A stretch of 63,747 nucleotides of DNA, the filler included, from Octopus bimaculoides (taxonomy: Eukaryota): assembly GCF_001194135.2 (NCBI RefSeq). It is 6 parts of 6 records of this genome, joined end to end, with 100 filler letters (N's around TTAATTAATTAA, not from the genome) between each part and the next. Parts side by side here need not be neighbours in the genome. Positions count along the whole stretch, not along the records: positions 11,272 to 20,108 come from NC_069000.1; 5 more parts are not named here. One strand, written 5' to 3'. A program made the position numbers and the translations under genes. The notes below the pieces were generated by a model, which was given only the letters and a program-made list of their open reading frames with translations, was not told the DNA's origin and ran no database searches. Position 1 is the first letter of the stretch. Each line of letters starts with the position of its first letter. Below, one piece after another: positions 13,893 through 14,077 of this stretch.

Positions 13893-14077
13893 CCCAGGCC
13901 CTATCAAATGTTTGTTAATGCTAAATCTTCCATTTTTTATTTTGATAGGGACCCAGGCCCTATCAAATGTTTGTTATTGCTAAATCTTCCATTTTTTATT
14001 TTGATAGGGACCCAGGCCCTATCAAATGTTTGTTATTGCTAAATCTTCCATTCTTTGTTTTGATAGGGACCCAGGCC
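13893..14077 (+). repeat. 59-bp tandem triplication spanning the Drp1 3' splice site
   Basis: cccaggcc recurs at 13893, 13952, 14011 and 14070; each unit ends tttgatag|gga. Confidence 0.95.

Follow-up and report, generated by a model that had tools for sequence, protein, structure and literature searches.

Tandem triplication of a 59-bp segment across a Drp1 intron/exon border in Octopus bimaculoides, probably recent and of slippage type

The window analysed here is a stretch of 63,747 nucleotides (filler included) joined from six parts of the Octopus bimaculoides genome, and the piece of interest (positions 11,272 to 20,108, from NC_069000.1) is 100% identical to chromosome CM046620.1 of assembly GCA_001194135.2, where the corresponding 77-kb locus is referred to as L001 (window coordinate = L001 coordinate minus 48772). 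The piece carries, on the plus strand, part of the Drp1/DNM1L gene, which is represented by the RefSeq protein XP_052830885.1 (dynamin-1-like). Mapping of this protein places the end of the preceding exon (...DVLTAIRNAT) at L001 55327, followed by the donor ACT|GTAAGT, and the start of the next coding segment (GPRPSLF...) at L001 62839, i.e. at window position 14067, in phase 0; the intron ending at 14066 thus has a length of 7511 bp. The authentic acceptor AG lies at 14065..14066 and the exon at 14067..14213, with a donor GT at 14214, as indicated by both the gene model and the translation, and an in-frame TAG at 14064-66 bars an earlier exon start in the productive frame. The two following Drp1 exons of the model are located at 15580..15672 and 17832..18023 on the same strand, the latter encoding VENLVAVELAYINTKHPDF...KENKELR. 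A preliminary description of this DNA had named Drp1 and had regarded the last of three candidate acceptors as the productive one, in agreement with the RefSeq model, which joins L001 55327 to 62839 in phase 0; its exon start at 14067 stands, whereas the exon end had to be corrected to 14213. The third acceptor presumably dominates.

The gene model itself has some particularities. XP_052830885.1 (668 aa) is devoid of a GED domain and seems to run into an intron after ...SLDKTD (L001 74828-75199), while the Drp1 isoforms of O. vulgaris/sinensis (654-759 aa) are complete; the O. bimaculoides model is probably truncated because of assembly gaps, which amount to 8.6 kb of N in the locus. At the junction of the first two exons of the piece (14205-14213 / 15580-15588) the cephalopod Drp1 proteins read HCGTQ|QEML, where most other animals have HCGTEVQQEML, i.e. 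two additional residues.

Several other elements are present in the piece. An abundant SINE-like repeat at 13135-13580 recurs over 30 times, in complete or partial form, with 67-93% identity on both strands within the 77-kb locus, and the intron upstream of the exon at 14067 consists largely of such insertions; at 7.5 kb it is far longer than its counterparts in Argonauta (632 bp) and Sepia (457 bp). On the minus strand, a stop-broken remnant of a Mos1/mariner-type transposase (16017-16998) lies in the intron that separates exons two and three of the piece, with matches to HTH_48 (E 3.5e-8) and, weakly, to Transposase_1 (E 0.0023). Towards the end of the piece, a near-perfect palindrome at 19957-20020 combines 30-nt arms that are 93% complementary with a 4-nt loop; it matched several miRNA hairpin families, at sub-threshold level only, and might represent either a small foldback element or the precursor of a hairpin RNA.

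Directly at the border between the 7511-bp intron and the exon at 14067, a 59-bp unit is repeated head-to-tail in 3.1 copies (13893-14077; TRF score 349, 97% matches, 0 indels), which represents the top-scoring tandem repeat of the piece as well as of the whole 77-kb locus. The in-register copies are located at 13893-13959, 13952-14018 and 14011-14077, and copies 2 and 3 show 99% and 96% identity to copy 1, which bears out the threefold presence of the unit already reported in the preliminary description. A 48-mer core of the unit occurs three times with up to 2 mismatches and did not occur in any of 100 shuffles. Every unit combines a CTAAA that resembles a branch point with a pyrimidine tract, an AG and 11 bases from the exon start. 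Unit 1 (13893..13951, plus strand) and unit 2 (13952..14010, identical to the array consensus) thereby form two putative decoy 3' splice-site modules, and unit 3 (14011..14069) contains the authentic module of branch point, tract and AG together with the first 3 exon bases. The CTAAA motifs, which are putative branch points, are located at 13921-13925, 13980-13984 and, in unit 3, 14039..14043; they lie within TTGCTAAA, a block that is common with Argonauta. Upstream of the array we found a (TAA)11 run at 13847-13879, a putative LINE tail according to the preliminary description; the region 13580-13846 had no repeat match within the 77-kb locus, and in a search against Rfam no family reached or came close to its gathering score, either within the array or in its surroundings.

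The boundaries of the array are formed by short direct repeats. Its length of 185 bp corresponds to 3x59+8, the additional 8 bp being an exact copy of CCCAGGCC, which is found at 13893-13900 and again at 13952, 14011 and 14070; these four occurrences, all inside the array, are the only ones in the 77-kb locus. The terminal copy (14070..14077) represents the right-hand direct repeat bounding the array and provides the codons for (G)PRP. The bases just outside of the repeats at 13893 and 14070 differ (cat vs gga). Moreover, each unit contains a perfect 10-bp inverted repeat directly inside the direct repeats, consisting of the left arm CCCTATCAAA (13899..13908 in unit 1, 13958-13967 and 14017-14026) and the right arm TTTGATAGGG (13941-13950, 14000-14009 and, in unit 3, where it holds the authentic AG, 14059..14068), which are separated by a 32-nt loop and extend to 12 bp with one bulge when folded. 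In addition, a 10-bp stem enclosing a 7-nt loop can arise across unit boundaries, between a right arm and the left arm that follows it. The preliminary description had thus been right about the reverse complementarity of the unit ends, but had put their length at 8 bp instead of 10, and the resemblance of 8 in 11 positions that it had noted at the left flank turned out to be the exact 8-bp direct repeat at 13893-13900.

The three units differ from each other at three sites, and the differences are nested: two sites read T and A in units 1 and 2 but C and G in unit 3, and a T-to-A change at 13918, private to unit 1, gives rise to TTAAT, a further branch-point-like motif. With respect to the acceptor, the two shared differences correspond to C for T at -14 and G for A at -10 in unit 3.

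The additional AGs are located at 13947..13948 and 14006..14007 on the plus strand and, together with the authentic one, confirm all three exon starts that had been suspected (13949, 14008 and 14067). Use of the first decoy would add 118 nt to the exon and lead to the stop TGA at 14093-14095, with a translation from 13949 that reads GPRPYQMFVIAK...FICS; use of the second would add 59 nt and lead to the stop TAG at 14113-14115. The earlier prediction that either upstream AG causes a frameshift and an early stop was therefore correct, and both stops precede the later exons at 15580 and 17832.

We scored the acceptors with a position weight matrix covering -20 to +3, which was trained on 31 further acceptors from the Drp1 genes of Octopus, Argonauta and Sepia and, given this small set, yields rough scores. 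The two decoys reached 6.6 bits and the authentic site 5.5 bits, with 3 of the 31 training acceptors below the authentic one; within the matrix, the substitutions at -14 (T vs C) and -10 (A vs G) are all that separates the decoys from the authentic acceptor. At the level of sequence, it is thus supported that the upstream copies are complete look-alikes of a 3' splice site. The authentic acceptor is equalled or exceeded in score by eight further AGs of this intron, and if these are unused, a good 23-mer alone is insufficient for splice-site use. The decoys are presumably mostly silent, but their equal or higher scores and the TTAAT of unit 1 leave room for substantial use. We also considered an in-frame rescue via the additional AG that follows 8 nt later in each unit (cccAG) and rejected it, since this AG scores about 0 bits, the frame from 14016 meets TAA at 14040, and 14075 is out of frame. 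Recursive splicing was discarded as well, because the AGs precede GG and not GT. For the ORFs that run across the array (74 aa and 42 aa), exact look-ups returned no entry. A query consisting of the N-terminal 401 aa and the predicted decoy tail retrieved no tail-bearing protein from the searched collection, a result that is uninformative because this collection contains no octopus transcript-derived proteins.

Homologous genes were retrieved by protein search. The 144-aa exon translation alone only returned fragments of up to 252 aa and no octopus protein, whereas a query with the exon concatenated five times recovered Drp1 of Octopus vulgaris/sinensis, O. bimaculoides, Argonauta hians and Sepia pharaonis. 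In Argonauta hians (locus L002, intron of 632 bp) and Sepia pharaonis (L003, intron of 457 bp) the intron is located at the identical codon boundary and has the same phase, and its end contains a single acceptor in each species, with no inverted repeat and no triplication. The interior of the octopus unit (TTGCTAAA...TTTGTTTTG) aligns with the end of the Argonauta intron: the orthologous window scores 23, compared with a best score of 24, and is joint second-best, behind one other, among all 3812 windows of the Argonauta locus. Because the intron position is shared and the interior aligns to Argonauta, we conclude that the acceptor and the block of branch point and tract are ancestral. The inverted-repeat arms and the triplication, judged by the sequences compared, would have arisen later, within the octopus lineage; this single-copy comparison covers Argonauta and Sepia. 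In O. vulgaris and O. sinensis the gene spans about 160 kb.

The Argonauta intron has features of its own. CCCCAGGCC is found 13 nt past the donor (L002 19309-19317), its 8-bp inverted partner CCTGGGGC follows about 22 nt later (L002 19340-19347), and the exon starts with GGGCCCAGGCC. A homology of CCCCAGGCC to the left direct repeat of the octopus array was considered and dismissed, as an 8-mer match only is at chance level. Just upstream of the branch-point region, a degenerate tandem repeat of the CCTAACCTGACC type with a length of about 330 bp (L002 19560-19890) fills the intron.

From these results we propose, with a probability of roughly 70%, that the array represents a recent tandem triplication of a 59-bp segment across the Drp1 intron/exon border, which is specific to part of the octopus lineage, arose by a slippage-type process, left two decoy acceptors behind and is probably neutral or slightly costly. 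The periodicity continues for 8 bp past the three units, which points to a pre-existing direct repeat of CCCAGGCC that bounded the duplicated segment; by simple arithmetic, the chance of such an 8-bp extension is about 1e-4. The ancestral single copy would accordingly have had the structure CCCAGGCC-[51 bp]-CCCAGGCC, with a 51-bp interior that started and finished with the 10-bp inverted-repeat arms, and two rounds of slipped-strand mispairing or unequal exchange between the direct repeats would have produced three units. Folded as DNA, the unit reaches -8.4 and -10.1 kcal/mol for its two strands (z -1.2 and -1.7), a modest stability, and complex perfect 10-bp inverted repeats occur 16 times elsewhere in 68.6 kb, compared with 4.6 in shuffles; a contribution of the hairpin to slippage is plausible. 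We infer the slippage mechanism and the order of the two steps from this footprint; NMD is the presumed fate of decoy transcripts. The nested substitutions and the private change of unit 1 fit two successive duplications.

The intron now contains two decoy acceptors, which precede the authentic one by 59 and 118 nt, and in the productive mRNA the extra 118 nt are spliced out with the intron. The 3'-most module is unchanged and abuts the real exon, and productive mRNA should for this reason still be made. Splicing to a decoy would result in a frameshifted transcript with an early stop, which is probably degraded and which we would regard as a by-product of the mutation rather than as a regulatory device. 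It is most likely that the triplication is neutral or mildly costly, with decoy use being removed by NMD. Other low-copy tandem duplications are present in Drp1 introns of the piece, namely 25 bp x2.8 at 97% (15088-15158) and 17 bp x2.7 at 89% (17259-17304), and a duplication of 24 bp x2.5 at 97% lies at L001 39287-39347; such young duplications indicate that the same mutational process is active in this locus.

As RNA, the array folds at -52.7 kcal/mol (z -3.25), and none of 200 shuffles was as good. A stable fold is expected, however, since any unit with an inverted repeat gives one once it has been triplicated. Partition-function calculations paired all three AGs with a probability of about 1.0, irrespective of whether we folded the array alone, the array in a 600-nt context or with a span limit of 70 nt, and the predicted equilibrium structure is a nested rod, in which the right arm of unit 3 pairs with the left arm of unit 1 (R3-L1, 0.92), and R1-L3 (0.91) and R2-L2 (0.93) are formed accordingly. 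Both the inverted-repeat search and these predicted folds are in line with the earlier statement that every one of the AGs can engage in base pairing, in alternative registers. The tight hairpins with a 7-nt loop (-13.9 kcal/mol) are open only to decoys 1 and 2, the equivalent region of the authentic acceptor reaching -3 kcal/mol; according to the model, these hairpins are the sole asymmetry among the acceptors, and it is a kinetic one.

Two alternative explanations concern the origin of the array. The triplication could be an assembly artefact or a miscount, in which the true allele would have one or two units and the short-read-based assembly would have threaded haplotype variants in tandem. 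Indeed, the array is known from one assembly only (GCA_001194135.2), which has the above-mentioned 8.6 kb of N in this locus, and k-mers shorter than 59 would give a cycle in the assembly graph, so that, on reasoning, k-mers by themselves would not settle how many middle units there are. Nevertheless, we consider an artefact unlikely: stutter normally yields identical copies, whereas the three copies here differ at three nested positions, which means that all of the variant combinations must exist in reads, and there are no Ns within or beside the array. The nested substitutions that fit two successive duplications speak against assembly stutter likewise. Far less probable, and in our view almost negligible, is the alternative, going back to the preliminary description, that a miniature TIR transposon of 48-51 bp, with TIRs of 8-10 bp and an 8-bp target duplication, inserted at the exon border, donated the acceptor and was then amplified in place. 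The segment does end in a perfect 10-bp inverted repeat and has CCCAGGCC on both sides, which would be compatible with such an element. The common intron position and phase in Argonauta and Sepia, each with a single acceptor, imply though that the acceptor predates the structure, and the presumed element would contain in its interior the very block of branch point and tract that is common with the Argonauta intron end. Furthermore, an insertion into an exon would need an acceptor to the left of the left-hand repeat, where the sequence is aaaaaacat and offers none; the right CCCAGGCC is set apart from the right arm by GGA (or by A, if arms of 10 bp are assumed); and the right-hand repeat is conserved GPRP coding sequence, as judged from Argonauta. 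Within the scope of our search, i.e. the 77-kb locus and metagenome contigs, further copies were absent. To our knowledge, 48-51 bp is also below the size of known MITEs.

A further alternative, which extends an idea of the preliminary description, concerns the function of the array rather than its origin and proposes a regulated unproductive splicing, in which the hairpin registers, perhaps in response to temperature or RNA editing, set the choice of the acceptor and thereby tune Drp1 via NMD. All three modules look competent by their scores (6.6 bits for the decoys vs 5.5 bits for the authentic site), both decoys lead to early stops well ahead of later exon junctions, the array folds more stably than its shuffles, the tight 7-nt-loop hairpins are available to decoys 1 and 2 only, and there is a precedent in yeast for RNA structure steering the choice of a 3' splice site (PMC3239191). 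We nonetheless hold such a switch to be quite improbable. With all three AGs equally paired and a similar accessibility of the branch points and tracts, no asymmetry is predicted at equilibrium; the array and the inverted repeat are not conserved, as neither Argonauta nor Sepia has them; the identity of 96-99% among the copies fits a recent event, which leaves scant time for selection to shape a device; and the stable fold follows automatically from the triplication. An even more speculative version, to which we give only a slim chance, would be a dosage rheostat, in which co-transcriptional formation of the 7-nt-loop hairpins on the decoys, together with temperature or A-to-I editing of the UAG embedded in the stem, might shift the shares of productive and NMD-targeted transcript; if this were true, mitochondrial fission capacity would be tied to the environment. 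Nothing that we found points to a regulatory role for the array.

The situation in octopus Drp1 resembles duplications of human 3' splice sites, which also span an intron/exon border, create tandem AGs and cause a frameshift when the upstream AG is used; a 16-bp duplication at CHRNE intron 10/exon 11 is reportedly disease-causing (Ohno et al. 2005). The human duplications are short and have one common branch point, from which scanning takes the upstream AG, whereas each octopus unit has a branch-point-like motif and a tract of its own, which means that the choice would be made at branch-point selection. Regulated unproductive splicing, as known from the poison exons and alternative sites of splicing-factor genes, is conserved, often ultraconserved, and autoregulated by a binding protein. 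Use of the Drp1 decoys would similarly place a premature stop upstream of later junctions; unlike these cases, however, the Drp1 array is young and absent from the other cephalopods examined (Argonauta and Sepia).

With respect to RNA structure, Gahura et al. 2011 (PMC3239191) are reported to have tested experimentally yeast structures that are needed for, or bias towards, one 3' splice site. A hairpin that lies between the branch point and the AG, or surrounds them, is common to yeast and octopus, but the predicted octopus stem covers all three AGs equally.

The proposed mechanism has a counterpart in the model in which direct repeats flanking a hairpin serve as the classic substrate for slippage (PMC4134008); for deletions and duplications, this paper cites Trinh and Sinden 1993. 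The octopus locus has the same arrangement, with a 10-bp inverted repeat whose base is flanked by 8-bp direct repeats and an exact head-to-tail product that is bordered in the direct repeat. The systems of PMC4134008 are bacterial or in vitro and have much longer repeats, whereas the octopus event is reconstructed from its footprint and its hairpin is modest.

Another close parallel is the Rogers model, according to which splice signals are duplicated in tandem in the genome (Hellsten et al. 2011, PMC3265369; Lehmann et al. 2010, PMC2891723). In it, as in octopus, a short intragenic tandem duplication copies the splice signals, and a redundant copy can be removed while the protein is unchanged. 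The Rogers cases start from an exonic AGGT, the duplication of which creates a new intron; in octopus Drp1 an old border was duplicated, and the intron grew by 118 nt and acquired two decoy acceptors. Intron gain by tandem duplication does not apply here, since the Drp1 intron is already present in Argonauta and Sepia at the same phase and was only lengthened. If real and fixed, the array would be a clean natural example of a border-spanning tandem duplication that is tolerated since its copies are spliced out. Three near-identical 3' splice sites located 59 nt apart in an essential gene also amount to a natural competition experiment, which would give the array value both as a teaching example and as a test case for models of splice-site choice. 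From these comparisons we conclude that the event belongs to a known class, the tandem duplication of splice signals (PMC3265369, PMC2891723), and is not a new kind of system.
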